From positions 1-64,000 of IMG/VR virus record IMGVR_UViG_3300030329_004647: DNA of 64,000 nucleotides; one strand, given 5' to 3'. The notes beneath the pieces were generated by a model, which did not search any database, was not told the DNA's origin, and saw only the letters and a list, made by a program, of their open reading frames with translations. This document shows, piece by piece, positions 13,663-45,815 of the stretch. Position numbers and translations under genes: made by a program. Position 1 is the first letter of the stretch, and each line of letters starts with the position of its first letter.

Positions 13663-13675
13663 AATATTATTTTTT

Positions 13676-14734
13676 TTATAAAGGTACGAAAAATTTTAAC
13701 TTATTCAAATTTTCCCACATAAAATTTGATTCACCAGATAACTCACCAAAGTAATTATTCATACAGGCATTTTTATATATAGGTTTAGATAACTCTAAAT
13801 CATTTATTATTTCAGGCATAGAAAAAGGAAAAACATCCAATATTAAACTTTTTAACCAACGTTCTTCTACAATAAGTGTTCCAAAACAATTCATAGATAT
13901 AGATATCGGTTTATCTTTAGAATCTCCCCACGCAATAGATATTAAACATTCATTTGCAAAATTTGCTCTCACCACATGTTTAGCTATATTTCTAGCTAAC
14001 AAACTTCCAGTTCTACTAAAAAAAGATGGGTCTTTCCCTACAAAATTTGGATTGGATAATTTAAGCCCATTTCTAGTAACTAAAGAGGGATTCCAAGACA
14101 AAGAAGTGCCTACGGAAACATCTGGACAAAGTTTTTTATGGGTTACTGTTCTGATATTTGGTGCTTGTCTCCCCAACTCAACACTTTTAAACACATCTGA
14201 AACTAAAGACTCAACATTTTTAATAGTTTTACTATTTTCTAAATCTAGAATCACATCGGTAAATTTAGTATTAAATCCATCAACCTCTGAAACTAACACA
14301 CACTTACCACTACGGGATATTCCTTTTTCCCAAAGGTTATGTGTAAGAAGTTGTCCTACTTTATCTTCTTTACTAATAAATTCCGCGGTTTCGGAATTTG
14401 CATAACCATACGTCACACAAGAAGGTCTTACTACTTCATCTGCAACATCATTTAAAAAACTTACATGTCTTATGGATGTGGTACCAAAATAAGATGTGTC
14501 CCCTGTGTAACCAAGAGTATCAGCTACTTCTAAAACACACTCATCAGTATCTATTTTGTTTTCAGAAAAAACTTCTCCACTAATAATAGATATTTGATTT
14601 TTGATAGTCGTTCTTACATCTAGCTTAACATCTTTAGATTTTTTTATATGACCATCTAATATTGTTTCAGAGATTGTGGATGAAACTCGGTCAGGATGTC
14701 CCGGCAAAAGATATTCAGTTATTTTTTTATACAT
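13676..14734 (-). CDS. metK: S-adenosylmethionine synthetase-like protein with degenerate active site
   Basis: GHPDR, SGEV, YGYANSET, GKDPS, ARNIAKHVV, KPIYKN retained; GAGDQG and GGPxGDxGLTGRKII signatures absent. Confidence 0.8.
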   Translation of the reverse strand: MYKKITEYLLPGHPDRVSSTISETILDGHIKKSKDVKLDVRTTIKNQISIISGEVFSENKIDTDECVLEVADTLGYTGDTSYFGTTSIRHVSFLNDVADEVVRPSCVTYGYANSETAEFISKEDKVGQLLTHNLWEKGISRSGKCVLVSEVDGFNTKFTDVILDLENSKTIKNVESLVSDVFKSVELGRQAPNIRTVTHKKLCPDVSVGTSLSWNPSLVTRNGLKLSNPNFVGKDPSFFSRTGSLLARNIAKHVVRANFANECLISIAWGDSKDKPISISMNCFGTLIVEERWLKSLILDVFPFSMPEIINDLELSKPIYKNACMNNYFGELSGESNFMWENLNKLKFFVPL

Positions 14735-18845: not shown

Positions 18846-18847
18846 TT

Positions 18848-20386
18848 ATGAAGGGATTAGATAAAATATTATTAGAAGGTAGGGTTGAAGATGCTAAGAA
18901 CTTACTGAACAAAACTTATGACGACATGGATTACGTCGAAGATATTGTTAGTGACTTTGTAGATGGAGACCCATCAGGTAATAACAAATACTTAATGTGG
19001 ATGGCAAAAGCTGTACAGGAGGAATATATGAATATAACCGATATTATAGAGTTGGTTACAGACTATCATAAACTTTTACCCAAAATCACCAATGCTTTAG
19101 CGATAAAAGTATTCGGTGCAGAGGCAGACTCAAACGCGATAGTTTCACCCAAAAGTATAGACTCCTACAAAACAGTAGAAGATTTATATAAAATAGTTGA
19201 TGCCGCGAAACAACTAGAAAGTAGAAAAGAAGTAGCGACCCAAGCAAAATCAGGAGCTAATAAAATATATGAAGATGAAAGATGGTTAGTGGTCAGACCA
19301 GACACTAGAGATGCATCCTGTTATTATGGTGCAGGCACAAAATGGTGTACCGCTATGAAAAATGCTGAACATTTTGATAACTACAATAAAAAAGGAAGAC
19401 TTTATTATTTGATTGATAAAAGTAGAGACCTAGGAAGATATTATAAAGTAGCTTTATACAAAGAGTTCGGTGCGGGGGGAAGAGATGAGTATTGGAATGT
19501 GGGTGAATGGTATGATGAATTAGATGATAGACTAACTAGTGATATGTTAGAGGTAATAGTAGCTTTACTACCTGAAAAGTTAGGTTCCCGTATTCTGCAA
19601 GACTTTAGAAAAGAGGAGGAAGAAAACGTACTATCAAGACCAACAGCACAAGAATTTGGTAAGAAATTTATAACATGGGTTGGAAATAAATACCCAGATG
19701 GGGACTTAATAACGAGTTTAAGTGGTCCATGGGCATTACAAGCATTTGTTCATGAAGGTGAGGAACCTTATATCTCACTGTCCGCAAGAAAATATGAGGG
19801 ATATGTTAATGTGGCTATTTTTGATGATGCTAATCCAGATGAAATAGTTGTAGATTTAAATGTTGAAGCATCTGCACATGAAAGAGAGAATTACTTTGAA
19901 ATGTCCGAGAGCGTAAGATACGGTACCCCTGAATTTGAGAGTAAATTTTGGAGATTCGACCTCAATGACGAGTTTACCGAAAGGAATTTTGAAACGTTCT
20001 ATACTCAGTTAATATATTGGTGGATTAAAAATAAAATTTTAAATAGTGATAAGGTAATAGAAAGAGTGGATTTAGATGAAGTATACTGGCAACAAGGAGG
20101 ACATAGTGGACGAAGTTTAAGATTTCATTATCCACCTCGAAAAGGAACAATGACACAATTATTTACAGATTATGTAATTAATAATCCAGGAAGAACAAGA
20201 CAACAATTTTATCAAGACGTTCTCAAAAAAAATCATACACCAGGTCATAATACTACATTTTTTGGTGGAATAATATCTTCAGGTATTGTAAGAGGAGAAA
20301 GAGGTCCTGGGAGAGGAAGAGGAATGCAATTCTACAAAGGACCTAACTACGATGCGTGGACTCAAGGGAAATTAAAAAGAGTATAG
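18848..20386 (+). CDS. paralogue of 17058 with different C-terminus
   Basis: MKGLDKILLE|G; DPSGNNKYLMW; DASCYYGAGTKWC..YYLIDK..YKVAL. Confidence 0.8.
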   Translation: MKGLDKILLEGRVEDAKNLLNKTYDDMDYVEDIVSDFVDGDPSGNNKYLMWMAKAVQEEYMNITDIIELVTDYHKLLPKITNALAIKVFGAEADSNAIVSPKSIDSYKTVEDLYKIVDAAKQLESRKEVATQAKSGANKIYEDERWLVVRPDTRDASCYYGAGTKWCTAMKNAEHFDNYNKKGRLYYLIDKSRDLGRYYKVALYKEFGAGGRDEYWNVGEWYDELDDRLTSDMLEVIVALLPEKLGSRILQDFRKEEEENVLSRPTAQEFGKKFITWVGNKYPDGDLITSLSGPWALQAFVHEGEEPYISLSARKYEGYVNVAIFDDANPDEIVVDLNVEASAHERENYFEMSESVRYGTPEFESKFWRFDLNDEFTERNFETFYTQLIYWWIKNKILNSDKVIERVDLDEVYWQQGGHSGRSLRFHYPPRKGTMTQLFTDYVINNPGRTRQQFYQDVLKKNHTPGHNTTFFGGIISSGIVRGERGPGRGRGMQFYKGPNYDAWTQGKLKRV

Positions 20387-23300
20387 ATGGGAAATTATGG
20401 TTATTTAAGATACGCACCTGAACTACTAAGAAGAACATTTAGTTATTTAGAATTTTGTTCTGGATGTGTTTTCGAGTCAGATATAGACTATACAACTTTT
20501 AGTGGTACAGCTATGGGTTTATATTCGAGTGGATTTACACCTTGTGATAAACAAGCTATTGATTACACTACTTTTTATATACTAGACCTAGTCAATGCAT
20601 CGATAACAGGTTCTACTTTTGACAATGAGTATTGGACAGGAAATAGTGGTAACATAATAGCTTCATCCACTACCGTTACTAATGTAGGTATTGGTACGGT
20701 TTCTCCTAATACTAAATTAACGGTTAATGGAGTTGTGTCAAGTACTACAAGTATGGCAGCTCACAATTTTGTATCTACGGGTGCCAGTAACCCATCCGCG
20801 GGATACACATTTAACTCACTATATTTAAGATTCCAGACTGCATATACTAGTACTTACATAGGATTCAGTGTTCCAAGTGGTTTTGACACCAACAGTACGA
20901 AAAACACTGTAGTTGGTCATGGAGCTATGGGAAATGCGACTTTAAACACCGCCACTGATAATACTGGTTTGGGGTATAGAACTTTCTATGATATTACTAG
21001 TGGTGATAGAAATGTAGCTATAGGAAAAACAGCTTCATATAATTTGACAAGTGGTGGTGATAATGTACACGTAGGAGCAAACGCTGGGTTCACAAGTAGT
21101 GTGGGTAATTATAATGTATTTATCGGTTCAGCTGCTGGTTATTATAGTGATGGGGTTGGAACCAATGCTAATACAGCTGTTGGTAGGAATGCTATGCTTA
21201 ACAGTAAGGCTGGTAAACACAATACCACTATGGGACACAACTCCATGTATGGAAATGGGGCATTTCCAGGTGGTACAGGTAATACAGCTATGGGAAGTAA
21301 TAGTTTATCCGCTATACGTGATGGTAAGTATAATACCACAATTGGTTTTGATGCGGGAGACTCGATTACTACGGGAAGTGGTAACACTACTTTAGGTGCT
21401 GGGGCAGGTGATAATATAGTAAATGGTTCTCATAATATTGCTATTGGGAGTGGAACTACTATTTTAGACGGTAGTGAAAGTTGGAGACTAAATATAGGTA
21501 ACATAATTTATGGTAGAGATTTATCTAGTATAAATAGTATAAATGCTGTAGGTATAGGAACACAAGACCCTACAAATAGACTACATGTTGTTGGACATGA
21601 AGAAGAAGACAATCCACTACGACTAGAAACACTCAGTACAGGAAGAGGTAATATAGTTGTAGCTGACGCACAAGGAGTTCTATATAAATCTCAAACCAGT
21701 AGTGGTCATACAGCAGGATTCTGGACTGCAGCTACTGGTGTAATATCGAATAGTGGGTTAACTGGTAACAGTGTAGCGGTAGGTACCAACTCACCTAATT
21801 CTTTATTTGAAGTAAAAGACTACATTACGTTTTATACTGGGTCCTCAGAAGCAAACACGTTCATAGGTTATCATAGTGGAATGAACTACAATGACGATAT
21901 GGAAAAAAATGTAGGGATAGGACACCAAGTCATGGCCTTAGCTGCAAAAACAACAGGTATAAATGCACCTCAGGAAAATACAGCTGTTGGATACCACTCT
22001 TTAAAACACATTACACAGGGAAAACTGAATACCGCTATAGGTACAGACTCATTACAAGAGTTAACTACAGGTCAATATAATGTAGGTATAGGTGCAGGAG
22101 CAGGAAGTGGAGTAACCACTCAAGAATACAATATTGCAATAGGTAGTCTGACTTTACGAAACATGGATGGTACAGCAGCAGGAAGACCTGCTCGTCACAA
22201 TATAGCGATTGGACATAATAGTCAAACCTACAACCCTTTAGGTGTTTTTAACACATGTGTTGGTGGTTTTACTTTAGGTAACACATTTGGTAATGCAGGT
22301 GGTAGTGGTAACACTGTAATGGGATATGGTGCTCTAAAAACCCAAGGTGGTAATTATAATGTTGCTATCGGTTTAGAAGTAGGTAGGGCTGTAACTGTGG
22401 GGAGTGGGAATACTCTACTGGGTTATAAAGTAGCGGACAACCTTACAACAGGAAACCATAATATTATAATAGGATACGATATAGACGCGGTTGAGATTGA
22501 TACAGACAACTCATTAAATATAGGAAAAGCAATCTATGGAACAGGAATAGGTTCGTATGGTGCTAAGATAGGGATAAATACCACTACACCTAACATCGTA
22601 GGACTTCAAGTAGCTGGTGATATTAGTGGTAGTACGATTAGTGCCAATACTAGTGTGTACGCTCAAGAAACAATGACAGCTCAAACTATTGCTTCAGTTA
22701 CCACACTATCGGCTATGGGTGACACTCACACACATGGGGACATCTATGTGGACGAAGATAAAAAAATCTATTTCGACTCAACGGACACTTATATATACGC
22801 AAACACTAATACCTTCGAAAATTTATTAATAGGAGCGGATAATAATATAATACTAGAACCAGATAATGACTTAACAATTAAAGTGGGAGGCACACAATAC
22901 GCTAGGTTTTTTGGTGCAGAGAAAAAAGTTAGAATAGGTACCACATCTAGTACATCACCAATAGCAGAATTAGAAGTAGTGGGTACGGTAAGTGCCGACA
23001 CTGCTATAATAAATGATAAAGTGGGTATTGCTACGGGAACTCCTATGACCGCTTTACACGTCGTTAATGATTATGGAAACGGTATCGGTACACCAGATTG
23101 GGGGTTGGACGAGGGTCAAGGTGGTGGAGAAGTTTTAAAATATGGTAGATTTAATAGTGCAATAACGGCAGAAGGACTAATTGTTATGTTAGTTAATAGT
23201 GGTGGTACTTCCGCGTGGTATAAAGCAGATGCTAGAAACCCTGCTGATACTAGAATTGCTCACCTAGTAGGTGTCGCGTTAGATACTTACGATAGTGGTG

Positions 23301-23572
23301 ACGTTAATAAAACAGCTACAGTTTTACTTAGAGGTTTTGTTAGAATTGATAGTACTTTATGGAATGGAACAACAGCTAACAGTAGTAGAGGTTCACAAGT
23401 TTATGTTTCTCCAGACGCTAATGGTGAATGGACTAATGATGTGTCTGATTTTGATACAACTAACGATGTAATGCGTGGAATGGGTAATTTAATTGTAAGA
23501 GACCCTAGTTCACCTAATGATTATTTTATTTGGTTTAATCCAGACCAAAACTATATTAAAATTCAAGCTTAA
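20387..23572 (+). CDS. putative tail fibre / receptor-binding protein with NTAxG beta-helix-type repeats
   Basis: many NxAxG/NTxxG repeats, VGIGTxxP motifs; C-terminal domain paralogous to 35344. Confidence 0.7.
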   Translation: MGNYGYLRYAPELLRRTFSYLEFCSGCVFESDIDYTTFSGTAMGLYSSGFTPCDKQAIDYTTFYILDLVNASITGSTFDNEYWTGNSGNIIASSTTVTNVGIGTVSPNTKLTVNGVVSSTTSMAAHNFVSTGASNPSAGYTFNSLYLRFQTAYTSTYIGFSVPSGFDTNSTKNTVVGHGAMGNATLNTATDNTGLGYRTFYDITSGDRNVAIGKTASYNLTSGGDNVHVGANAGFTSSVGNYNVFIGSAAGYYSDGVGTNANTAVGRNAMLNSKAGKHNTTMGHNSMYGNGAFPGGTGNTAMGSNSLSAIRDGKYNTTIGFDAGDSITTGSGNTTLGAGAGDNIVNGSHNIAIGSGTTILDGSESWRLNIGNIIYGRDLSSINSINAVGIGTQDPTNRLHVVGHEEEDNPLRLETLSTGRGNIVVADAQGVLYKSQTSSGHTAGFWTAATGVISNSGLTGNSVAVGTNSPNSLFEVKDYITFYTGSSEANTFIGYHSGMNYNDDMEKNVGIGHQVMALAAKTTGINAPQENTAVGYHSLKHITQGKLNTAIGTDSLQELTTGQYNVGIGAGAGSGVTTQEYNIAIGSLTLRNMDGTAAGRPARHNIAIGHNSQTYNPLGVFNTCVGGFTLGNTFGNAGGSGNTVMGYGALKTQGGNYNVAIGLEVGRAVTVGSGNTLLGYKVADNLTTGNHNIIIGYDIDAVEIDTDNSLNIGKAIYGTGIGSYGAKIGINTTTPNIVGLQVAGDISGSTISANTSVYAQETMTAQTIASVTTLSAMGDTHTHGDIYVDEDKKIYFDSTDTYIYANTNTFENLLIGADNNIILEPDNDLTIKVGGTQYARFFGAEKKVRIGTTSSTSPIAELEVVGTVSADTAIINDKVGIATGTPMTALHVVNDYGNGIGTPDWGLDEGQGGGEVLKYGRFNSAITAEGLIVMLVNSGGTSAWYKADARNPADTRIAHLVGVALDTYDSGDVNKTATVLLRGFVRIDSTLWNGTTANSSRGSQVYVSPDANGEWTNDVSDFDTTNDVMRGMGNLIVRDPSSPNDYFIWFNPDQNYIKIQA

Positions 23573-26045: not shown

Positions 26046-29000
26046 ATGCGAAATTTTCTATTAATTATATTATGTTTTATATCGTTTGGAGTTGTAGCAC
26101 AGAACGATTCGTGGTTAAACCTACAAATCCAATTTGATAACTATCCTGAAGAATTAGACTGGAAATTATTTCAATTAGACACTTTAGCACCGAACAATAT
26201 TCTTGTCGCAGAGGGCGGACCTTACTACTCAACACCAAACCAACATTTACTTAATGTTTTTATACCTAACTTACATTCTAATGAAACTTACATATTAGAA
26301 GTCCATGACTCATTTGGGGACGGGTTAAGTTGGCCTAATAATGGGTATGTTTATTTGTCTAATATTTGTACGGACACCATATCATATGTGGAGGGAGACT
26401 TTGGTCCTTTTTTTACAGACACATTAACTGTTTCACCATGTAATTCCCCACCATTAGGTTGTCCAGATACATTAGCACTTAACTACGATTCTCTTGCGCA
26501 ATACACAGACATGAGTGTATGTACTTATCCTCCTTGTACTTCAGGTTTAGACACTCTATATGTTGAACCTATATGTGATAATGGGGTTTCAAAATTATAC
26601 TGGCAGTGGTCAGACCAAACAGATACAAATCCTAATTGTGGGATTATCGGTTATTATAGAGGAACAGACCTAAATAACCTCCCTTTTTATCCTTGGCCAA
26701 GTAACTGGCCCCAAGGAGGATTAACAACAACTATTAACCAAACATCACAAGGACAAATGCATTATTTTTATGCGATGTTAGGTGATTCTACTTTAACTGA
26801 CACTCTATCCATAATGCCTATACAATGCATATTAGGATGTACCGACCCTACAGCGATGAATTATAATCCATGGGCAAATGAAGATGACGGTAACTGTCAA
26901 AGCGCACAAGGAAGTTGTAATTACGGAGAAACATGTGTGAGAGTAATAGTAACACCAGATTCTTATGGAGAAGAAACTTATTGGTCACTAACCGATACTA
27001 TTACAGGAACCGTATTAGGTTCTGTGAATCCTGGTTTCTACTCAACACCAGGAGTTCCAGTAACCACTAATGTATGTGCACCTGAAAATTCAGTATTAGA
27101 ATTTACATTAAACGACCAATATGGAGACGGTATGTGTGGAACTTGTTGGGGTGGAATAGATGGTTCGGTGTTAGTAGAAGCTTGTGGTGATACTATAGCA
27201 CACATTGGACCTCCTACACCTATGGATTTTGGAAGTGATACAACGTTTGTTGCGGTTCCAGCACCAGTGTGTACAACAACAGGACCTACAGTAGGTTGTA
27301 TGGACCCAGGTTATGTCGAATACCTCCCAACAGCAACACAACAAAATCCAGGAGATTGTGTAACACCCGTTCAGTTGGGTTGTGTTGACCCAATGGCTTT
27401 TAATTATGACTCCACAGCCAATCAACAACTTATAACACCTAGCTGTACTTATACGTTAAGGTTATTAGATGGTGCTGGTGATGGATGGTTCGGTTCTTGG
27501 ATAGGAATCACACAAGGAGATTCTATTATTGGTGATTTTACTATGACACAAGGAGACACTCTAGACATTCCAATAGTATTAGACGCAATAAAACCAGCAA
27601 AAATATATTTCTTTACACTAGGAAATTCAGTATCAACAGCTAGTCAATGTGGTGTTCAACTAATAAACCCAATGGGACAAGTTACATTTTACGCTGGTTC
27701 TAATCCATGGACAGACCCTATTATTCCATTTCCTTTTATATACACCACAATTCAAGATTGTGGAAACAGTTGTGTACCTACAATTCCAGGATGTATGGAT
27801 TCTACCGCATACAATTATAATCCAGGAGCAAATGTACCAGATACAGTGTTTCCGTGTTTTTACAATCCAGGGTGTATAAGTCCTGCTTATTTAGAATACC
27901 ATACTTATTTAGATTCTGTTGGTGTTGCTCCAGATTTTCTGGACCCATTTTCTTGTCAGAACCTTGCAATTTTTGGTTGTATGGACTCAACTCAATTTAA
28001 TTACGACCAATATGCTACTGTTAATTGGACTTCCGCGACCGATTCATCAGACCCGTGTGTCCCTATGATATATGGTTGTACAGACGCCACAGCTTTAAAT
28101 TATGACCCATTGGCTAATACAGAAAATTATACGTGTATACTACCAATATATGGGTGTACGGATTCAACAGCTTTTAATTTTAACCCATTAGCGAATACAA
28201 ATAATGGAACTTGTATTGCTGTAATAGAAGGGTGTACTGACCCTACAGCTATGAATTATAATCCTAACGCTAATACAGATGATTTTAGTTGTATAGCTTA
28301 CATTTACGGTTGTACCGACTCCACGATGTGGAATTATAATCCATTAGCAAACACAGATAACGGAACCTGTGAACCTTTTGTTTATGGTTGTACGGATGTT
28401 ATAGCAGCTAACTTTGACCCATTAGCAAACACAAATAACAATACATGTTATTATAATCCAGGTTGTACCGACCCACTTTATGTAGAATTTTATAATCAAG
28501 GATTTACCGCTGACTTTGACGATGGTAGTTGTTTGACCCTAGTTGTATATGGTTGTACCGATAACACTATGTTTAATTATGACCCAACCGCAAATGTAGA
28601 TAATGGTAGTTGTGAACCTTTTGTGTATGGGTGTATAGACTCTACTATGTTTAACTATGACCCATTAGCTAACACGGATAATGGTACGTGTGTACCTTTT
28701 ATTTACGGGTGTATGGACGCCACAATGTTTAATTACGACCCATTAGCCAATACAAATCAAGTGAGTGAAACAGATATCTCCAACCCATGTATACCAATTA
28801 TATATGGATGTACCGACTCAACAGCATTTAATTATGACCCTTATGCAAATACAGATAACGGAACTTGTGAAGCAGTGGTATACGGATGTACAGATGAATA
28901 CGATTTTCCAGCATACCTAGATTCAACTTATATAAATTATTTACCAGGATTTTCAACGGTTACCACTTACAATGTTGATGTCACAGCAAATACAGACGAC

Positions 29001-29417
29001 GGGAGTTGTCTATATTATGATGAAAATAGTGTAACAGGACCAGGTACACCTTATTGGTTAAATGATTCATGTTACGCTTGGGTAGTATATGATGTTGACC
29101 CATACTGTATGACAAATCAATGGGATGCTTTTTGTCAATCACAATATGATTATTGTGAATTTGGAACACCAATTGGATTAAATGAAATGACACGTGACCA
29201 AGTTTTGATTTTTCCTAATCCAACTAATGACTTAGTAACTATTAGGTCTAAAGAATCAGTAGATGTAAATATTTATGACTTCTTAGGTAATTTAATATTT
29301 GAATTAAAATCAATACAAGAAGAAAAGGTGGACCTGCGACCTTATTCTTCCGGTATTTATAATATACAACTTACTTACAAAGGTATAATTATAAATCATA
29401 AAGTAGTTAAACAATGA
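26046..29417 (+). CDS. T9SS-secreted Cys-repeat protein
   Basis: Sec signal peptide; about 18 GCxDxxAxNYxPxA..C repeats; C-terminal IFPNPTN..IYDFLGN..SGIYNI..KVVKQ sorting domain. Confidence 0.88.
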   Translation: MRNFLLIILCFISFGVVAQNDSWLNLQIQFDNYPEELDWKLFQLDTLAPNNILVAEGGPYYSTPNQHLLNVFIPNLHSNETYILEVHDSFGDGLSWPNNGYVYLSNICTDTISYVEGDFGPFFTDTLTVSPCNSPPLGCPDTLALNYDSLAQYTDMSVCTYPPCTSGLDTLYVEPICDNGVSKLYWQWSDQTDTNPNCGIIGYYRGTDLNNLPFYPWPSNWPQGGLTTTINQTSQGQMHYFYAMLGDSTLTDTLSIMPIQCILGCTDPTAMNYNPWANEDDGNCQSAQGSCNYGETCVRVIVTPDSYGEETYWSLTDTITGTVLGSVNPGFYSTPGVPVTTNVCAPENSVLEFTLNDQYGDGMCGTCWGGIDGSVLVEACGDTIAHIGPPTPMDFGSDTTFVAVPAPVCTTTGPTVGCMDPGYVEYLPTATQQNPGDCVTPVQLGCVDPMAFNYDSTANQQLITPSCTYTLRLLDGAGDGWFGSWIGITQGDSIIGDFTMTQGDTLDIPIVLDAIKPAKIYFFTLGNSVSTASQCGVQLINPMGQVTFYAGSNPWTDPIIPFPFIYTTIQDCGNSCVPTIPGCMDSTAYNYNPGANVPDTVFPCFYNPGCISPAYLEYHTYLDSVGVAPDFLDPFSCQNLAIFGCMDSTQFNYDQYATVNWTSATDSSDPCVPMIYGCTDATALNYDPLANTENYTCILPIYGCTDSTAFNFNPLANTNNGTCIAVIEGCTDPTAMNYNPNANTDDFSCIAYIYGCTDSTMWNYNPLANTDNGTCEPFVYGCTDVIAANFDPLANTNNNTCYYNPGCTDPLYVEFYNQGFTADFDDGSCLTLVVYGCTDNTMFNYDPTANVDNGSCEPFVYGCIDSTMFNYDPLANTDNGTCVPFIYGCMDATMFNYDPLANTNQVSETDISNPCIPIIYGCTDSTAFNYDPYANTDNGTCEAVVYGCTDEYDFPAYLDSTYINYLPGFSTVTTYNVDVTANTDDGSCLYYDENSVTGPGTPYWLNDSCYAWVVYDVDPYCMTNQWDAFCQSQYDYCEFGTPIGLNEMTRDQVLIFPNPTNDLVTIRSKESVDVNIYDFLGNLIFELKSIQEEKVDLRPYSSGIYNIQLTYKGIIINHKVVKQ

Positions 29418-31522: not shown

Positions 31523-33928
31523 ATGCAAATCAACAAGTATCCCACCGCGACCATCTTTGGTGTATATATTCTATTTCTATTATTTCTACTATTCAACTCA
31601 ACACAATTAGTAGCTCAAACTATAACCATACAAGACCAACAAACCTTAGAACCCATCCCCTTTGCGAATATTTCGTCCTACCAGTTGTTAATAACAGAAA
31701 CAGCTAATGGGTTTGTTACAGATTCAGTTAGGGTTGGTACAACAACAGACATCAATGGTCATGCTGATATTTCAGACTGGTCCGATGATATGTTACTACA
31801 TATATCATTTCTTGGTTATGAAAAAAGAAAGATAACTAAAGGAGAGATATTAAAAAAGAATAATGTTATTTTCTTAAGAGAGACCGCACAGTTTTTAGAA
31901 CAAGTGGTAATATCTGCTAGTAAGTTTAGAGAAAAAAGAGAAGATGTGGCTTATTCTATAGAATCTTTAGATAGAAAAACCATAGAAAACGCAAATGTAA
32001 CACAAACTCCAGACCTTCTTACAAAAACTAATGGAGTAACAATTCAAAAGTCACAATTAGGTGGAGGTTCCCCAATCATAAGAGGATTTGAAGCTAATAG
32101 AGTTCTATTAGTAGTTGATGGTGTTAGAATGAATAACGCGATTTATCGTTCTGGTCACTTACAAAATTCTTTAACAATTGACCCTAATGCAGTAGAAATA
32201 GTGGAAGTGGTATTTGGTCCTTCATCCACGATTTATGGGAGTGATGCGTTAGGAGGGGTAATACATTTTTATACACGTAAACCACAATTTAGTAAGAATG
32301 ATAAAATATTTACCCAAACAAAGGTTGTGAGTCGTATGTCTCTTGCTGATGAAGGAATGTCTACTCATATAGATTATAACATAGGAGGTAAAAATGTTGC
32401 TAATTTTACCAGTTTAACATATACTAGTTTTGGGGATTTGAGGATGGGTCAAAACAGAAATCATGGGTATGATGATTGGGGGTTGGCAAACTATTACATT
32501 AACGAGAACGACGAAATGGTGGAAAATGAGAATTCTCATATACAAGTAGGTACAGGTTATGAACAATATGATTTACTTAATAATCTTACATGGAAAGCAA
32601 CTCCAGAAATAATTTTAAGATGGAACACCCAACTATCCACTACTACAAATATACCTAGATATGATAACCTACAAGATTATAATGATGGTGAGTTAAAATG
32701 GAGTGAATGGCACTACGGACCTCAGACTAGATTTTTTACTTCACTACAAGGTAATGTATATAAACAAACTAAATTTTATGATAATTTTAGAGTAACATCC
32801 GCATATCAATTCATTAAAGAGGATAGAATAACAAGAAAGTATCAATCAGAGGATTATAATAACACATATGTAGATGTACACGTATCCAGTATTAATTTTG
32901 ACCTTTCAAAGAAAAAACTTTTATACGGGTTTGAGTTTGTTAATAACCAAGTAATATCTACCTCAACGGCAGGAACTCAACCAAGATATCCTTCAGGTGG
33001 AAGTGACTTAACATCAATCGCAGCTTATACAACATATAAACATCACTTTTCAGAAAAATTCTTAATTGCGGGTGGGTTAAGATATTCTTCCATATTTGCA
33101 AACATGTCTTTTAACAATGATGACCCTGTATTTGTTACTGATGAAATAAATGCAACAAACGGCGCACTTACGGGAAATATAAATAGTGTTTGGAAACCAG
33201 GGAATGGGTGGAAATTCGATGTTGTTGGAAGTACAGGTTTTAGAAGTCCAAACATTGATGACTACGGTAAAGTCTTTGTTAAAAGAGGTGACATGGTTAT
33301 CCCTAATCCAGACCTTACACCAGAATATGCTTATAATACAGAAGGTACTTTGACTAAAACTTGGTCCAACATATCCTTAGCTGGAACAATATATAATACA
33401 TGGTTAAGAGATGCTATCACCAAACAAGATTTAGGGTATAGTCAAATACATGAAGACGAAGAAGTAAATGTGCAAACCCTGATGAATACTGAGGAAGCCT
33501 ATGTTAGAGGTATTTCTTTAGTTGGGAAATACGAACCAGTAGAAGAACTTTATTTTGAATCCTCATTTAACCTACAAAAAGGATATGATATATCAAATGA
33601 TGAACCTCTTGGTCATATTCCACCCGCATATGGTAAATTTTTAACTAGATTTAAACTTAAAAAATTTGAAGGAAGGGTTTGGTACGATTACGCTTTACCT
33701 AAATTATTAGAGAATTCTAATGGGGCGACGGACAATATTGATTTAGCGACTGATGAAGGTTGGCCTTTTTGGTATACACTTAATTTAAGTATGACCTATA
33801 ATATAAACAAAGGTCTTACAATGCAAATAGGGTTGGAAAATTTAATGGACCTACACTATAGAACATTCGCTTCTGGTCTTTCAGCACCAGGAAGAAATGT
33901 GATAATAAAAGCACAATATAAATTTTAA
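31523..33928 (+). CDS. TonB-dependent receptor (Bacteroidota type, N-terminal CarboxypepD_reg-like domain)
   Basis: EQVVISAS, GGGSPIIRGFEANRVLLVVDGVRMNN, FGPSSTIYGSDALGGVI, FRSPNIDD, C-terminal PGRNVIIKAQYKF. Confidence 0.95.
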   Translation: MQINKYPTATIFGVYILFLLFLLFNSTQLVAQTITIQDQQTLEPIPFANISSYQLLITETANGFVTDSVRVGTTTDINGHADISDWSDDMLLHISFLGYEKRKITKGEILKKNNVIFLRETAQFLEQVVISASKFREKREDVAYSIESLDRKTIENANVTQTPDLLTKTNGVTIQKSQLGGGSPIIRGFEANRVLLVVDGVRMNNAIYRSGHLQNSLTIDPNAVEIVEVVFGPSSTIYGSDALGGVIHFYTRKPQFSKNDKIFTQTKVVSRMSLADEGMSTHIDYNIGGKNVANFTSLTYTSFGDLRMGQNRNHGYDDWGLANYYINENDEMVENENSHIQVGTGYEQYDLLNNLTWKATPEIILRWNTQLSTTTNIPRYDNLQDYNDGELKWSEWHYGPQTRFFTSLQGNVYKQTKFYDNFRVTSAYQFIKEDRITRKYQSEDYNNTYVDVHVSSINFDLSKKKLLYGFEFVNNQVISTSTAGTQPRYPSGGSDLTSIAAYTTYKHHFSEKFLIAGGLRYSSIFANMSFNNDDPVFVTDEINATNGALTGNINSVWKPGNGWKFDVVGSTGFRSPNIDDYGKVFVKRGDMVIPNPDLTPEYAYNTEGTLTKTWSNISLAGTIYNTWLRDAITKQDLGYSQIHEDEEVNVQTLMNTEEAYVRGISLVGKYEPVEELYFESSFNLQKGYDISNDEPLGHIPPAYGKFLTRFKLKKFEGRVWYDYALPKLLENSNGATDNIDLATDEGWPFWYTLNLSMTYNINKGLTMQIGLENLMDLHYRTFASGLSAPGRNVIIKAQYKF

Positions 33929-35343: not shown

Positions 35344-37386
35344 ATGGCAGATTTATCCAATCTTAAAATATCAAGTACCTTTCCAAGAGTCTTACAAAGA
35401 GACCCTGACACTGGTCAGTTACAAAACTTGGTGGGAAATAAACCAACTAATCTTATTATTCAAGATACTACATTAAGATATGTAGATGGTAATCAACAAA
35501 ACAATTATATATTAACATCTGACGCTGATGGTAATGCAAGATGGGCAGTTAATTCTGGTGGTGGAGGAAGTACCGATATCTATTGGTCAGCAAATACCAC
35601 AAACACCACACCTAGTATAACACCATCTGGGACTAGTGTAGCTACACCTATTTTAGTTAAGAATGACATAAGTGGAGCTACTGATTTATATTTAGGTAAT
35701 TCTACCGCTAATGTTGTAGATACCTATACAGCTTCTACTATTTCTGCTTATGATAAACTAACAATTAAGGGAAGACGTGTTGACAATGATTTTATAGTAT
35801 TACAACAGGATGAAGTTAAATTGTTTCTGGATGGAACGGAATCAATAGTGTTTAGAAGTGGCACTCACCCTAGTGGGAGTGCTGACTACATTTTTAATTC
35901 TGCTAGCCAAGATATTGATTTCGCGATTAATGGACCTACAAATACAAACTTCAAAGTCAGTGTTTCGAGAGATGCTATAAGGATGAAAGACCACGTAACA
36001 GTTGGAGGAGCATCTTTTGTTTCTTGGAATAATATGGAAAATTGGGGACTTGCGGTAACAGGAACATCATACTTAGTATCAGGAGGAACCAACGGATTAG
36101 ATAAAAACGCGATAACAACGAGTGGTAATACTCACATACACGGTTCACTTAGTGCCAACACAAATGTTACTGTAGATGGAACTCTATCCGCTAACACCAT
36201 CTCAAGTAAGAATATAAATGAATCAATTCTAACAATCCAATCTGATGAGGTAAAAATAGCAAGTCACGGTGGAAGTCCTGAATATCTAAATATTAAAGAT
36301 GATGTTATTAAATTTTATATTGATAATTCAGAAGCGGTTACCTTTGACAAGTCAAACTCACAATATCTCTTTAACGCTGCTCAACAAGATTACGATTTTG
36401 TAATTGGTGGAAGTACAGGAATTAACACATTCCAGGTAGACGTAAGTGCGAACCTAGCTAGATTTAGAGACCACCTAACAATAGGTACTTCTCTTGGTAT
36501 ATCCAGCCAAATAGGGATAAGGTTTGGATTATCAGTAACTGGAACTTCTTATTTAATTTCAGGTGGTACTCAAGGTGCTGATAAAAACGCAATAACAACA
36601 AGTGGAAATACACATATACATGGTGTGATGAGTGCTAATACCGCTGCATATGCACCTTTCTTAACGACAGACTATGTTATAGCAAATTCGTCAAATGGTC
36701 TGTGGTTAAAAGAAGACGGTGGTAGAGGTATAGAAATTCAAGATGGAGGAAATATTGCAATTGGTGGTACAGGACAAAACGCCAATGAACAATTAACAGT
36801 TAGTGCGGGAATATCTGGAGTTACCGTTTATTCCAAAACTGATATGTACGCGGGAGTTACAGGTAGAATGAGTGGTGGTACAGTAGTAGCTGCTACGAGT
36901 TTATCAGCGATGAGTGAGACAACCATAGACGGTAATCTTAATTTAAATGGTTATGTAAAATATAAACAACCCGCATTTTTGGATAATAATGCTGGTTCAG
37001 GAGAAATAGCATATTTTGGTATTGCACAAGGAGGTTCAACCACTAAAGGAAAATTATACTATCTCCAAACAAATGGTGCTTGGGATGAAGTTCAGGCAAA
37101 TGCTTCTAGTAATGATGGTAATAGTCAATTATTAGGTATTGCTCTAGGTTCCACACCAGCTTCTAATGGAATGTTGTTAAGAGGGTTTTTTGATATGAAT
37201 AGTCATTTTACTGGTACTTTTGATGAGGGAATACCAGTATATATTGATGATAATAACTCGGGTTACATAACAGTCACCCAACCAGCTGGAAACAATGAAT
37301 TTGTTAGAGTAGTAGGATATTGTACCAATACCGCAAACGTTATTTATTTTAATCCAGATGGAACTTACATAACAGTGAACGCGTAA
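35344..37386 (+). CDS. putative tail fibre / structural protein with internal duplication
   Basis: two copies of ...GLxVTGTSYLxSGGTxGxDKNAITTSGNTHIHG; C-terminal domain paralogous to 20387. Confidence 0.7.
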   Translation: MADLSNLKISSTFPRVLQRDPDTGQLQNLVGNKPTNLIIQDTTLRYVDGNQQNNYILTSDADGNARWAVNSGGGGSTDIYWSANTTNTTPSITPSGTSVATPILVKNDISGATDLYLGNSTANVVDTYTASTISAYDKLTIKGRRVDNDFIVLQQDEVKLFLDGTESIVFRSGTHPSGSADYIFNSASQDIDFAINGPTNTNFKVSVSRDAIRMKDHVTVGGASFVSWNNMENWGLAVTGTSYLVSGGTNGLDKNAITTSGNTHIHGSLSANTNVTVDGTLSANTISSKNINESILTIQSDEVKIASHGGSPEYLNIKDDVIKFYIDNSEAVTFDKSNSQYLFNAAQQDYDFVIGGSTGINTFQVDVSANLARFRDHLTIGTSLGISSQIGIRFGLSVTGTSYLISGGTQGADKNAITTSGNTHIHGVMSANTAAYAPFLTTDYVIANSSNGLWLKEDGGRGIEIQDGGNIAIGGTGQNANEQLTVSAGISGVTVYSKTDMYAGVTGRMSGGTVVAATSLSAMSETTIDGNLNLNGYVKYKQPAFLDNNAGSGEIAYFGIAQGGSTTKGKLYYLQTNGAWDEVQANASSNDGNSQLLGIALGSTPASNGMLLRGFFDMNSHFTGTFDEGIPVYIDDNNSGYITVTQPAGNNEFVRVVGYCTNTANVIYFNPDGTYITVNA

Positions 37387-38396: not shown

Positions 38397-39119
38397 ATGA
38401 AAGAAGTTTGTATATTAGGAGACGGCCAATTAGGAAAAGAAATACAAGAACAAACAGGATGGAAATGTATTTCTCGTAAAAAAGATGGTTTTGACATAAC
38501 CAAACCCGAAGAATGGGATAAACATTTATTAAAAGTAGAGTTTGGTGCAATCCAACATTGTCCTTATAGTGTTATTGTAAATTGTATAGCAGATACAGAT
38601 ACATACTCAAATAAGAGAGATTCCCATTGGAATATAAATTATAAAGGAGTTGATGACTTAGTAGAATTTTGTAATAAATGGAAAATTAAATTAATACACA
38701 TATCTACTGATTATCTTTATGGTGGAGGTCTACCCAATAAAACAGAAAATGAGGTCCCATCTCATTGTGAAAACTGGTATAGTTATACTAAATTATTGGG
38801 AGACGCTCACGTACAACTAAAATCTAAAAATTATTTAGTAATACGATGTTCTTTTAAACCTTCCCCTTTTCCTTTTGAAAAAGCTTTTAATGATGTAACT
38901 GGAAACTTTGACTATACCGATAAAATTGCTAAATTAATTATTAAACTTATAACTAATAAAGCAACAGGAATATTTAATGTTGGTACAGAAGCTAAAACAT
39001 TATATGAATTGGCTATTAAAACTAATCCAAAAGTCCTCCCAACCACTAGGAGAGGAACACCTTTCCCTAATTCCGTGTTAATGAACATATCAAAAATGAA
39101 AAATTTCTTGAAAATTTAG
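38397..39119 (+). CDS. rmlD: dTDP-4-dehydrorhamnose reductase-like SDR
   Basis: ILGDGQLGKEI, IVNCIA, KLIHISTDYLY, YSYTK (YxxxK), YLVIR. Confidence 0.8.
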   Translation: MKEVCILGDGQLGKEIQEQTGWKCISRKKDGFDITKPEEWDKHLLKVEFGAIQHCPYSVIVNCIADTDTYSNKRDSHWNINYKGVDDLVEFCNKWKIKLIHISTDYLYGGGLPNKTENEVPSHCENWYSYTKLLGDAHVQLKSKNYLVIRCSFKPSPFPFEKAFNDVTGNFDYTDKIAKLIIKLITNKATGIFNVGTEAKTLYELAIKTNPKVLPTTRRGTPFPNSVLMNISKMKNFLKI

Positions 39120-41848: not shown

Positions 41849-41856
41849 TATTTATT
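41849..41856 (+). promoter_or_regulatory. TATTTATT motif (putative late promoter)
   Basis: 5 nt before ATG 41862. Confidence 0.45.
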
Positions 41857-41861
41857 TGTAT

Positions 41862-44800
41862 ATGAAATCCAAAACTACATACTATACAGACGACTGGAAG
41901 GAGAAACTCGTAGATGACTTCTATACTGAATATTACCCCAAACCAAGACTAGAACAATCTATTTTTAAGTATTTAGATAATTTATATTATATAAGTGAGG
42001 ACGAAATATTTGGTACTATCTATAGAAAATCTGACGATTACTTTATGGGTAAAACTCAAATCACCGATGATTTACAAAATTTATTTGGTTTAACCTTACC
42101 TAATCTTTTAAAGATAGGTCCAGGGGAAGATGATTATATTGAACCCGCTAGAAATCCAATCCCTAGAAGGGTTTTAAATAATTGGATGAAAAGTAAACGA
42201 AATACAGAAAGACTTCAGAAAGAATCAATAGTAAAAGATAGTATTGTTTGTGATAATTGTGGATGGAACTGGAAAATAAAAGATGGTGGTGATGATTTAT
42301 ATATTTGTCACAAATGTAATCATAATAACACCCCTTTAAATGAACATAAAGAATCTAAAATAAATCCACAGTTAATGATAGGTGATGAAATCACTGTAGT
42401 TGATGTTGATGAAAGTTTTGGTACACTCCATACACCAGAACGATATAAAGATTATGTGGTTATAGGTAGACGACACAGACAACCAGAAAATTGGGAAGGA
42501 CCCGATGCGGATACTAGTTATTATGTGATAGAACCATTAAGTGGTTATAGTGATAAGGAAACATTAGGTCGTATGTTATCTGGTGGTGGAAGAAAAAGAG
42601 AAGAACAACTCCACCCAACAGATAAATGGATGTTAAGAAAAGGATTTTTAAGAGGAGAACATTTAACTGAACAAAAATCACTAAAAAATAATTTACTTAA
42701 TGTAGAATTAGAAGAAGGTGATAAAATACTTGTAGTGAGTAGAAAGGAGACACCAGCAGGATATAGAGAACCCTTACCAGACCACGACGTAGAGTTATTC
42801 ACCACCTATGTGGTTATAGAGAAAAGATATAGTGGGCATAAAGCAAAACACCCTTACCATTATTTCTTATTACCAGAGGAACAGTATGAGATTTTTATAA
42901 ACGACCCATATGATGATAGTGTAGATAAATCGGTAAAATCATTATTCCCTTGGATACACGATTGGATTTTAGATAATGAAGATATAATGACTGAACATAA
43001 AGAATCAAAAATTAATCCTGAGTTAGAAGTAGATGACATCATAAGAATAATTGATGTTGATGGGGAACATGATAGAAAACCAGAAAAATTTAAGTTATAT
43101 AGAGTAGCGTATAAGGGAAATAAACCAATTGGACATGGGTACTCGTGGGAAACAGAACCTAGAATATGGTATGATATAGTACCAACAGACCTTGACTACG
43201 ATACAGTAAGAACTTTTGATTCAAGGGGCACACCAATGTATCACAGTAAAAGTTTATATCCTGGAGATACATGGATTAAAATGGATGAAGTTATTAGTGA
43301 ACAGAGTGCTGATAGTCCAGGTGACAACATAAGTGATGATGATGAAGAATACGTAGACAATACACCGTTTACCAAAAAAGAAATTTTAATCTTAAATCAA
43401 TTACACAAAAAATTAACTAAAGATGAATTACACTCTCTTGTTATTGATACACCAGGAAAAGGAAGTTCGGATTACTACCAACACCAAGCTAAGTTTTGGG
43501 AAGTTATGAAATTATTTGGGATGGATTATAAAAATGACGCTCCCTACCAGACTAGAATTTCACAGTACGCTAAATGGGCATTAGACAATTGGACTCCAGA
43601 AGGTGATTATGGAAAGATTGGAAATCCCCTAAAAGTACCACTTAAATGGTACAATGTATCGAGAGAGGAAACAGGTACTCAAGTAGAGTATAAATCTGGT
43701 GAGGCAGAGGTACTAGGGTTTGATTATGATAATGCAGAAGAGAGAGCTAATAATGAATTTTGGGAATGGGGTGGAGAAATGGAACCATTTGATTATGGAG
43801 ACTATGAGGCACACGATAGTGAAATTACAGGTATTGACTTTGTTAGATTGGATGAAGCGAAAAGAATAGTGAAGGTGTTAAATGAACAAGATGAATCAGG
43901 TTTAGAAAGACAAATAATTCAAGCGGAAACTGAAGACTTCCAAGAACTTATGTATGAGGTTTTGAGAAGAGTTAGACAGATTCCGTTGGATAAAACAGTA
44001 TCACCTAGAAGAATTAAAGAAATTTTAAGTGATGACGGAGTAAGTTTCGACCTCTATCAAGGAGCAGACCTTAATGAGGAAATACATAGAGAATACAATA
44101 GAGTAAGATTTTATGAATATAGTCAACAACTTTTAAAAGCTGCACATTCAAAAGGAGTAAGAGGTCACTATTTTGAAGGTTTATTAGCAGGATTATTTAA
44201 TGGTGAAGTTGTTAGTCCGATGGAAGGGGAAATGACCGACCCAAAAGAAGATGTCCTTATTAATGGTATTAACTACTCAGCTAAATTGGTACGTGCTCAA
44301 GATAAAAAATGGGGAACATCCAGTTTACTAGGGGGATTTAAAAAAGCAATAATTCAAAGACTAGTGGATAGAGACATCGAAGTACCTGATGAATTATTGA
44401 AACGAAAGTTAGAGGTTAAAACTCTTAATGAGTTAGTAGTTTTATTTCCCGAAGGAGACCCAGATAGAGAGTCTTTTCAAGTTAGACATATGGAATTGTT
44501 TTTAAAAGATTCATCTGTAGACAGAAAGTATAAAGAGATAACAATGAACTATGCTTTTACCAGTAAATCAGAAGAGGAAATAGGTATAGAATTACATTGG
44601 ATTTTTGGATTAATATGGGGTACCAATGAGACTTTTGAAGGAGAAGAATTACCTACTACTAATTTAAAATATTATTTAATGGATACTCCTAGTTTAATAG
44701 ATGGAATACTCGATGGTGATATTCATTTTACAAAAGGTAGAAACATTAGGGAAATTAGAATATCGGAAAAAAGCATGATAGACTCAAATGGGGCTAGTGA

Positions 44801-45815
44801 ACACTCAATCATATTTCCAGTGATTACAAGACAAGACCTTAAAAATTTATTATATGACGAAAAGTCAGAAGAAATGGTTTATAAGGTAATGGGTATATTT
44901 AAAGACTTCAGACCAGGTACTGAAAAATATATGCATCATAAAATAGCTGATGTAATCGCTGATAATCCACAAGAGTTTATTAAAAGGTTACAAGATTTAT
45001 TTCCAGAAAAGAAAATCACAAAAGAAACTTTTTCCAGAATTATAGAAAATATAGATACTACAGAAATAAAATATGCTATAGACCAACAATATAGAACTGA
45101 ACCTGATTTAAAATCTGATATTATACAATCAATACTTGGAGACGAAGAAACAACTGAGGATACTTTTTATTTAAACCCACAAGGTGTAGAATTAAACGTA
45201 CCACCAATCAAAATAGCACAAAAGGTTAGTGATATTAATGATTATGGTGAGATTAATTTTGAAATGCAGGGTGGAAACGGTATCGCTTATTTTACAGATA
45301 AAGACTTAGTAATAAAACTTACAACTGATGAATCTGAATATCACACAGCGACTAAACTACTAGGAACAGAAAATAAACATATTGCTAATGTGTTAGAAAG
45401 TGCAAAAATTAACACTTCACATATAAAAGGTGACCTTTTTATGATAGTAACAGAAGCTTTACATATGACCAAAGAGATGGAAGAAATATGGCACAAATGC
45501 TGTTGTTCAGAAACAGACCCAATTTATATAGATTATACTCAAGAACCAGCTAGACCTATATCACCAGTATCAGAACATGCAATATGTCAACCTATATATG
45601 ATAATATTATATCAATAATTAGTGATTTAACGTCACATGGAATAACTTGGAGTGATATTGGGATAGATAATCTAGGTATTAAAAATGGAAAACTAGCCTT
45701 AATAGACTTAGGAGATAGTCAAGGTGGGTCACTTAAAGGTAAAATACTAACATTAGAAAGGAGAAATGATTTAATACAAAGAGAACTTTTATATGAAGAT
45801 GTATTCCCTAACTAA
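41862..45815 (+). CDS. polyprotein 1: Zn ribbon, 3 SH3-like repeats, acidic domain, nuclease-like and protein-kinase-like domains
   Basis: modules delimited by LNE|H, LTE|Q, MTE|H, ISE|Q, LNE|Q, IIE|N; kinase motifs GGNGIAY, VIK, DIGIDN, IDLG. Confidence 0.8.
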   Translation: MKSKTTYYTDDWKEKLVDDFYTEYYPKPRLEQSIFKYLDNLYYISEDEIFGTIYRKSDDYFMGKTQITDDLQNLFGLTLPNLLKIGPGEDDYIEPARNPIPRRVLNNWMKSKRNTERLQKESIVKDSIVCDNCGWNWKIKDGGDDLYICHKCNHNNTPLNEHKESKINPQLMIGDEITVVDVDESFGTLHTPERYKDYVVIGRRHRQPENWEGPDADTSYYVIEPLSGYSDKETLGRMLSGGGRKREEQLHPTDKWMLRKGFLRGEHLTEQKSLKNNLLNVELEEGDKILVVSRKETPAGYREPLPDHDVELFTTYVVIEKRYSGHKAKHPYHYFLLPEEQYEIFINDPYDDSVDKSVKSLFPWIHDWILDNEDIMTEHKESKINPELEVDDIIRIIDVDGEHDRKPEKFKLYRVAYKGNKPIGHGYSWETEPRIWYDIVPTDLDYDTVRTFDSRGTPMYHSKSLYPGDTWIKMDEVISEQSADSPGDNISDDDEEYVDNTPFTKKEILILNQLHKKLTKDELHSLVIDTPGKGSSDYYQHQAKFWEVMKLFGMDYKNDAPYQTRISQYAKWALDNWTPEGDYGKIGNPLKVPLKWYNVSREETGTQVEYKSGEAEVLGFDYDNAEERANNEFWEWGGEMEPFDYGDYEAHDSEITGIDFVRLDEAKRIVKVLNEQDESGLERQIIQAETEDFQELMYEVLRRVRQIPLDKTVSPRRIKEILSDDGVSFDLYQGADLNEEIHREYNRVRFYEYSQQLLKAAHSKGVRGHYFEGLLAGLFNGEVVSPMEGEMTDPKEDVLINGINYSAKLVRAQDKKWGTSSLLGGFKKAIIQRLVDRDIEVPDELLKRKLEVKTLNELVVLFPEGDPDRESFQVRHMELFLKDSSVDRKYKEITMNYAFTSKSEEEIGIELHWIFGLIWGTNETFEGEELPTTNLKYYLMDTPSLIDGILDGDIHFTKGRNIREIRISEKSMIDSNGASEHSIIFPVITRQDLKNLLYDEKSEEMVYKVMGIFKDFRPGTEKYMHHKIADVIADNPQEFIKRLQDLFPEKKITKETFSRIIENIDTTEIKYAIDQQYRTEPDLKSDIIQSILGDEETTEDTFYLNPQGVELNVPPIKIAQKVSDINDYGEINFEMQGGNGIAYFTDKDLVIKLTTDESEYHTATKLLGTENKHIANVLESAKINTSHIKGDLFMIVTEALHMTKEMEEIWHKCCCSETDPIYIDYTQEPARPISPVSEHAICQPIYDNIISIISDLTSHGITWSDIGIDNLGIKNGKLALIDLGDSQGGSLKGKILTLERRNDLIQRELLYEDVFPN

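Follow-up and report, generated by a model that had tools for sequence, protein, structure and literature searches.

Judged by its sequence and predicted structure, the C-terminal region of a large protein encoded by an uncultivated phage is a protein-kinase-like (PKL) domain with a complete set of catalytic residues. The gene lies in the first 64 kb (64,000 nucleotides [nt]; hereafter, the window) of the 232-kb IMG/VR virus record IMGVR_UViG_3300030329_004647, to which CheckV assigns a completeness of 72%. The source is a T4-like jumbo phage, and our overall explanation, that it encodes a minimal PKL domain within a multi-module protein, is one we consider probable, with appreciable room for doubt. 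Positions 45048–45815 of the plus strand form the last 255 codons of a single stop-free open reading frame (ORF; 41856..45815; 1324 amino acids [aa]). Its TTG at 41856 is a mechanical start; the ATG at 41862 is the likely one, giving a protein of 1317 aa, and an identical database protein starts there too. Pfam, PHROG, and NCBIfam returned zero matches over the full length of the 1317-aa protein. The kinase domain is present as a single copy, no further copies having been found in the same phage.

An initial annotation of the window had picked out five kinase motifs in this region, namely MQGGNGIAY, VIK, the Glu of DESE, WSDIGIDNL, and IDLG. Each lies where that annotation had placed it, and all are invariant or nearly so in homologues. 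VIKLT begins at 45309 and DESEY at 45327, WSDIGIDNL spans 45648–45674 with its Asp codon at 45654 and its Asn codon at 45669, and IDLGD begins at 45702 (Table 1). A word-indexed search retrieved 41 homologues that share 42–71% identity with the window protein over the kinase region. Across the 31 close homologues of our first alignment (A1; 42–71% identity) the kinase motifs are invariant, the invariant blocks being GG-G-A-FT, V-K-T-D-SEY-TA, ES...H, E-L, CCC, W-D-G--N-G, and DLG. A second alignment (A2) holds 73 complete domain copies drawn from the family recovered by profile search and has a mean column identity of only 21%. Just five of its columns are invariant: the second Gly of the glycine-rich loop, the beta3 Lys, the helix-C Glu, the catalytic-loop Asn, and the DFG Asp. 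Conservation in the two alignments, combined with the match of the family profile to solved kinases, places this motif pattern far beyond chance.

That match was obtained by searching PDB sequences with the A2 profile, which aligned to the kinase TTK at an E value of 2.6e-8 with the catalytic loop and DFG motif in register. At E ≤ 1 the profile reached approximately 1060 distinct sequences; the 60 matches listed are all protein kinases, bar one, a CDK-like chain whose entry goes by another name. Structure prediction agrees. AlphaFold2 (AF2), supplied with A1, gave a confident core spanning residues 50–237 of the modelled segment, with predicted local distance difference test scores mostly between 85 and 96, and above 85 over residues 60–230. 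The core comprises a five-stranded N-lobe with helix C, a hinge, helix E, the catalytic loop, and the DFG strands, and it carries the glycine-rich loop, the beta3 Lys, the helix-C Glu, the catalytic Asp, an Asn at +5, and the DFG Asp. The initial annotation had suggested Foldseek as a check for a PKL fold; in that search every one of the top 50 PDB matches was a protein kinase or kinase domain, and there were 227 matches at E ≤ 1e-3. VIA-align superposed 146 residues on the kinase domain of PKR with a Z score of 11.8, and it listed 196 chains at Z ≥ 8. Neighbours in the AFDB clusters, BFVD, and the ESM Atlas were kinases or uncharacterised phage proteins, the nearest being small uncharacterised proteins of uncultured marine phages. 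The annotation's reading of a protein-kinase-like core is thus borne out by the AF2 fold, by Foldseek, by VIA-align, and by the TTK profile match.

The predicted fold is also strikingly incomplete. Its ordered chain stops approximately six residues past D-L-G, and the last 30 residues are disordered in the AF2 model and poorly conserved in A1; the activation segment, the APE motif, and helices F–I are therefore absent. This distinguishes the domain from the canonical kinases of PF00069. PKR, TTK, and bacterial YabT, which belong to that family, are its best structural and profile matches, with N-lobe, catalytic loop, and DFG in register, but they possess an activation segment, APE, helices F–I, HRD, and a Lys two residues after the catalytic Asp (D+2), all of which are missing here. 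PF00069 did not match the window protein at E ≤ 1. Among the 73 copies it matched one at E ≤ 0.01, below threshold; the best-scoring relative reached 24.7 bits against a cut-off of 31.7.

Truncated kinases of this general design have been described. Iyer, Burroughs, Anand, de Souza, and Aravind predicted in 2017 that polyvalent proteins contain monophyletic kinase domains of the Ser/Thr/Tyr type, which retain the active site although their entire C-terminal subdomain is gone (PMC5512222). These domains occur mainly in phages and prophages of the Verrucomicrobia–Chlamydia group and of Bacteroidetes, with stand-alone copies in the latter, and their authors, who judged them to be nearer protein kinases, proposed by analogy to T7 that they phosphorylate host proteins after DNA-coupled injection (PMC5512222). 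Our domain resembles this Kinase-PolyVal family (PF18762) in lacking the C-terminal subdomain while retaining the residues for ATP binding and phosphotransfer, in occurring both within giant multi-domain phage proteins and as stand-alone versions, and in its probable association with Bacteroidetes-type phages. At the sequence level the two diverge. The PF18762 model matched neither the window protein (E ≤ 1) nor any of the 73 family copies (E ≤ 0.01), and it found nothing in the six-frame phage genome (E ≤ 10) or in five related jumbo-phage genomes (E ≤ 1); against one relative it reached an E value of 0.018, over the glycine-loop region only. Of the 73 copies here, just 18 carry the Gln that marks the last N-lobe strand of Kinase-PolyVal, and neither a conserved His ahead of the catalytic Asp nor the insert that separates these two residues in that family is present. 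Just before the glycine-rich loop, where a counterpart of the Glu that Kinase-PolyVal carries at the ATP site N-terminal to strand 2 might be sought, no conserved Glu is evident, the position having been judged without the authors' alignment. Given the failures of the PF18762 model and the absence of two of these signatures, we treat the domain as a separate and larger sequence family of the Kinase-PolyVal kind, the comparison with PF18762 having been made through its hidden Markov model (HMM) and the published description.

The extent of this family became apparent from an exhaustive profile search, in which 628 representatives, clustered at 50% identity and found on metagenomic phage contigs, scored E ≤ 1e-3 and 141 of them E ≤ 1e-10; a length-restricted profile search added close fragments only. 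Distant members are either stand-alone proteins of 190–280 aa or giants of 1000–2400 aa that carry two to five copies of the domain in tandem. In the giants the partner domains include ART-PolyVal, an Acb1-like 2H phosphoesterase, NUDIX, GNAT, a poly(A)/CCA nucleotidyltransferase, and HD, together with weak Tpt1 signals. These distant relatives clearly count as polyvalent proteins, setting the kinase domain beside enzymes of counter-defence and RNA-repair type. A subfamily profile located 59 IMG/VR loci, many on contigs of 200–500 kb and some in complete genomes with terminal repeats. A set of 185,579 cellular species genomes yielded zero matches in two scans, one with a stand-alone relative and one with a one-pattern subfamily profile. 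The family is confined to phages, and its catalytic set is under strong purifying selection. A tblastn search of 50,697 GenBank phage records with the whole protein and with a distant family domain found no match, and a cluster look-up found no public source that names any family member as a kinase. What is new, then, is a very large family, invisible to current domain libraries, that resides in uncultivated and often jumbo phages and forms tandem arrays.

From the residues retained and the modelled fold, the domain very probably binds Mg-ATP and transfers phosphate. In the mechanism we envisage, the glycine-rich loop, the Lys–Glu pair, the Asn, and the Asp of D-L-G would bind Mg-ATP, and the loop Asp would serve transfer of the gamma-phosphate. 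The missing substrate-binding lobe, and the loss of the first Gly of GxGxxG from the glycine-rich loop of the window copy, might instead indicate a pseudokinase or an ATP-binding regulatory module, acting as sensor or scaffold, with no transfer activity. Pseudokinases typically lose the catalytic Lys, Glu, Asp, Asn, and Asp, whereas these are kept in 72 or 73 of the 73 divergent copies, and we regard this alternative as very improbable.

As to the acceptor, we lean slightly toward a protein, of host or phage, over a small molecule, because the core is nearer protein kinases than APH or ChoK and because the helical pocket of the small-molecule kinases is missing. Several results weigh against this assignment and, in part, against the kinase reading as a whole. 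No Pfam kinase model reaches threshold against the window protein. The catalytic loop lacks both the HRD His/Arg and the D+2 Lys typical of Ser/Thr kinases: in A2 the column two residues before the Asp holds Ser in 38 copies, Trp in 11, and Phe in 8, with no His or Arg, and Lys occupies D+2 in none of the 73. Rio, Bud32, APH, and ChoK types share a catalytic loop of this sort. Some distant family members, moreover, score best on the APH (3.7e-8) or ABC1 (3.5e-6) models, which, taken with the atypical loop, makes a non-protein substrate possible.

These same features would suit a PKL enzyme after the manner of the APH, ChoK, or Kdo kinases, acting on small molecules, nucleotides, or RNA ends; its acceptor might be a nucleotide used in signalling, a precursor of the cell envelope, or RNA with a 5'-OH end. 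Such an enzyme would also be in keeping with the company that relatives keep (Acb1/2H phosphoesterase, NUDIX, CCA-adding enzyme, and Tpt1), with the polynucleotide-kinase-like P-loop kinase in the adjoining ORF, and with the presence of APH, Kdo, and YrbL clusters among the atlas neighbours. Yet the C-terminal helical subdomain that forms the substrate pocket of APH and ChoK is absent here, and it is eukaryote-like protein kinases, and not APH, that the domain matches best in structure and in sequence; the APH model (PF01636) found no match in the window protein and matched only one of the 73 copies at E ≤ 0.01. Iyer et al. likewise placed the analogous polyvalent kinases nearer protein kinases (PMC5512222). 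We therefore consider a small-molecule, nucleotide, or RNA-end kinase improbable, and the APH-type enzyme that the initial annotation had itself allowed for is, in our assessment, the less likely possibility. For a protein kinase without a substrate-docking lobe, target choice would have to come from partner modules, or else the kinase would be promiscuous.

Two groups of known kinases offer parallels. T7 gp0.7 (T7K), which the initial annotation had cited, phosphorylates host proteins broadly and disarms defences (PMC13645617), and the phage kinase JSS1_004 is a broad anti-defence weapon (PMC12345140). Like our domain, T7K is a phage-encoded, atypical PKL kinase, and T7-like phage kinases appear at rank 42 among the structural neighbours. 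T7K homologues, however, have DPV in place of DFG and in most cases end in a shut-off (SO) domain, whereas the window protein has DLG and no domain after the kinase; they belong mostly to Autographiviridae and are expressed early and not packaged, in contrast to a domain that a T4-like jumbo phage encodes within a 1317-aa protein. Sequence searches revealed no link between the two. T7K accordingly stands as a functional precedent, and kinship with it was rejected on the difference between DLG and DPV. OspG and NleH (PF22303) are also kinases of approximately 200 aa with a reduced C-lobe, delivered by a pathogen into its target cell, and a comparison of language-model features (score 0.96) puts them with the closest of the named clusters. 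They differ in being bacterial type III effectors that act in eukaryotic cells, and the HMM does not match here; we take the resemblance as a structural analogy only, one of fold economy. The family points to a second kind of phage kinase, much larger than and unrelated to the T7K/JSS1_004 type, with at least 628 clusters at 50% identity. Its domain is among the smallest kinase folds with a full catalytic set and could for that reason show how targets are chosen without a substrate-binding lobe.

Table 1. Features of the gene for the 1317-aa protein and of the adjoining ORF, in window coordinates
Feature	Position (nt)	Strand	Remarks
Multi-module ("polyvalent") gene, 1317 aa	41862..45815	+	No Pfam, PHROG, or NCBIfam match in any part
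N-terminal module (residues ~3–163)	41862..42344	+	Kept in nearly all homologues; closes with P-[LIVM]-[NK]-E (LNE, codons 42336–42344)
CxxC...CxxC zinc-ribbon-like insertion	42249..42317	+	Absent from aligned homologues
Three internal repeats in tandem, ~110 aa each	42341..43300	+	Linkers (L/M)-x-E-HKESKINP
Conserved module, residues 495–667	43338..43856	+	Ends R-L-D-E (LDE codons 43848–43856)
~395-aa module between the 495–667 module and the kinase domain	43857..45038	+	Closest relatives only; low AF2 confidence
Junction I-I-E (codons 45039–45047), then low-confidence helical lead-in to the kinase domain	45039..45161	+	A1, AF2
Ordered kinase-like core: N-lobe, hinge, helix E, catalytic loop, DFG strands	45162..45725	+	AF2, structure comparisons
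Glycine-rich loop MQGGNGIAY	45264..45290	+	Alignments A1 and A2
beta3 Lys of VIK	45315..45317	+	73/73 domain copies
Helix-C Glu of SEY	45336..45338	+	73/73 domain copies
Cys-Cys-Cys triplet	45498..45506	+	Invariant in close family only (A1)
Catalytic loop D-I-G-I-D-N	45654..45671	+	Asp in 72/73, Asn in 73/73 copies
D-L-G, DFG equivalent	45705..45713	+	Asp in 73/73, Gly in 67/73 copies
Disordered, poorly conserved tail	45726..45812	+	Cannot supply helices F–I; A1, AF2
Neighbouring giant ORF, 1787 aa	45839..51202	+	C-terminal P-loop AAA_33/zeta-toxin/polynucleotide-kinase-like domain, nt 50621–51106

Comparison with homologues by BLAST revealed that the 1317-aa protein is modular, with at least six modules, of which the kinase alone is identifiable. 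"Polyprotein," the term used in the initial annotation, is a fair description of such a protein, its cleavage being putative. The number of ~110-aa repeats differs among homologues. All 41 close homologues pair the 495–667 module with the kinase domain, either of the two coming first. When residues 485–1060 were modelled with AF2, only 500–667 were predicted confidently, and a Foldseek search with the model of that segment found no significant match in the PDB or AFDB. Atlas searches with the N-terminal and 495–667 modules gave scores of 0.6–0.7 and no lead. In one branch of close relatives, on contigs of up to 277 kb, the kinase lies near the N terminus (approximately residues 200–450), a 495–667-type module follows later, and the C-terminal end is formed by a DUF192 (PF02643) domain. 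The position of kinase and module in this branch indicates that module order has been shuffled.

Delivery of polyvalent proteins together with DNA is a published hypothesis (PMC5512222). For the polyvalent kinases, delivery followed by host takeover, which the initial annotation also envisaged and placed before the start of phage expression, is by analogy a reasonable hypothesis and one already in print; what is new is that, in the T4-like lineage studied here, the junctions between modules of the protein carrying the domain look, in sequence, like prohead-protease sites. The motif [LIVM]-x-E is conserved at three of them (42336–42344, 43848–43856, and 45039–45047). At the first, nearly every homologue ends its N-terminal module in P-[LIVM]-[NK]-E, regardless of what follows; R-[LM]-D-E closes the 495–667 module; and [LIVM]-x-E stands ahead of the kinase module in 26 of 29 homologues. 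The gp21 protease of T4 cleaves after (L/I)-x-E, and the record encodes a T4 gp21-type prohead protease (Peptidase_S77) at 116713–117174, along with a large terminase at approximately 111 kb and a Gp23-type major capsid protein at 119–120.6 kb. T4 Alt, the T4 internal proteins, and the ejection proteins of giant phages provide models of proteins that are packaged in the head, processed by a gp21-type protease, and co-injected with DNA. The likeness to Alt and the internal proteins consists of the [LIVM]-x-E at the junctions, in a phage that encodes homologues of both the Gp23-type capsid protein and the S77 protease. By this analogy the polyprotein would be packed into the head and possibly cut at its [LIVM]-x-Glu junctions by the T4-type prohead protease, and the packaged protein would enter the cell with the DNA and modify host factors or defences early. 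A hint of delivery comes from the conserved junctions, the gp21-type protease, and the co-directional tail-spike and lysin genes.

Other observations count against packaging. The motif [LI]-x-E is not enriched in the protein as a whole, where it occurs 15 times against approximately 21 expected. The idea of an overall enrichment was accordingly rejected, and only the placement of the motif at junctions and its conservation are of note. No MuF domain was found, the head genes lie approximately 65–75 kb from the kinase gene, and the gene's nearest neighbours, which are small unknown ORFs, a TonB receptor, and a protein tagged for the type IX secretion system (T9SS), offer no virion evidence. The last three points would fit a cytoplasmic kinase made during infection and left unpackaged, like T7 gp0.7, with the giant protein serving as an intracellular multi-enzyme scaffold. 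No virion-anchoring domain, whether MuF, portal, or another, and no head gene nearby contradicts that arrangement; the neighbours are of an auxiliary type, which in one relative extends to a superoxide dismutase; and the T7 kinase and JSS1_004 both act as expressed early proteins. Set against it are the location of the gene in a long co-directional block with tail-spike-like and transglycosylase/M23 genes, the conserved [LIVM]-x-E junctions in a genome with a T4-type prohead protease, and the polyvalent architecture of the relatives, for which the published reading is DNA-coupled delivery (PMC5512222). An unpackaged cytoplasmic kinase retains a real, if minority, share of our expectation. That the 1317-aa protein is packaged and delivered with the DNA, as analogy would have it, is a tentative proposal to which we give somewhat less than an even chance.

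A more specific form of the packaging proposal is doubtful, if of wider consequence. The protein would be a head-packaged polyprotein that the S77 protease cuts at [LIVM]-x-Glu, so that a free kinase of approximately 29 kDa is ejected with the DNA and the other modules, and the junctions would double as recombination joints. The ~395-aa insertion between R-L-D-E and I-I-E would be an example of such a joint, and the freed kinase, lacking a C-lobe, would be unregulated and promiscuous. If true, T4-like jumbo phages would possess injected effectors organised as a cassette system, unlike the polyvalent proteins hitherto described, which are processed by metallopeptidases. Because the family forms tandem arrays beside known counter-defence enzymes, the hypothesis that polyvalent proteins act as early injected effectors could be tested directly with one small, easily expressed domain.

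Within the close family, the insert between hinge and helix E has a further peculiarity. In addition to the Cys triplet (Table 1), a fourth Cys (near 45585) and a His (near 45420) are invariant among close relatives and absent from the wider family. From sequence, this Cys/His cluster might form a metal site.

Downstream of the kinase gene, the AAA_33-type domain of the 1787-aa ORF was recognised by Pfam (7.4e-11) and as phrog_505, the remainder of that ORF being without a family match. Two adjacent giant proteins thus each end in a kinase, of different folds. Both are encoded in a block between 17 and 60 kb whose genes all lie on the plus strand, among them tail-spike-like genes and a transglycosylase/M23 peptidase gene. 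The last of these (54728–56170) encodes a 480-aa protein that combines an M23-type metallopeptidase with a lytic transglycosylase, a combination typical of virion-associated cell-wall-degrading proteins. At 17058–23572, two paralogous ORFs of approximately 550 aa (phrog_17056) precede a 1061-aa protein resembling tail-spike or virion-structural proteins (phrog_6002, 3.5e-38); these genes are likely a receptor-binding module.

The host is probably a member of the Bacteroidota, a sequence-based assignment drawn from a T9SS sorting domain and a SusC-like receptor encoded by the phage. The former closes a 1123-aa protein (26046–29417), and the latter is a TonB-dependent receptor with Plug, barrel, and CarboxypepD_reg domains (31523–33928). 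A relative on a 181-kb contig has these genes in the same order, and a role for the two proteins in remodelling the host outer membrane is possible.

Elsewhere in the window we noted a UvdE UV endonuclease (23–946), an ATP-dependent DNA ligase (4030–5322), a ClpP protease and an S-adenosylmethionine synthetase on the minus strand (12991–14734), and an RmlD/epimerase-like protein (38397–39119). A 680-aa ORF at 35344–37386 shows weak, sub-threshold similarity to the Gp23 capsid family (E 0.006, model residues 266–319), which may reflect chance or a distant capsid-fold protein.

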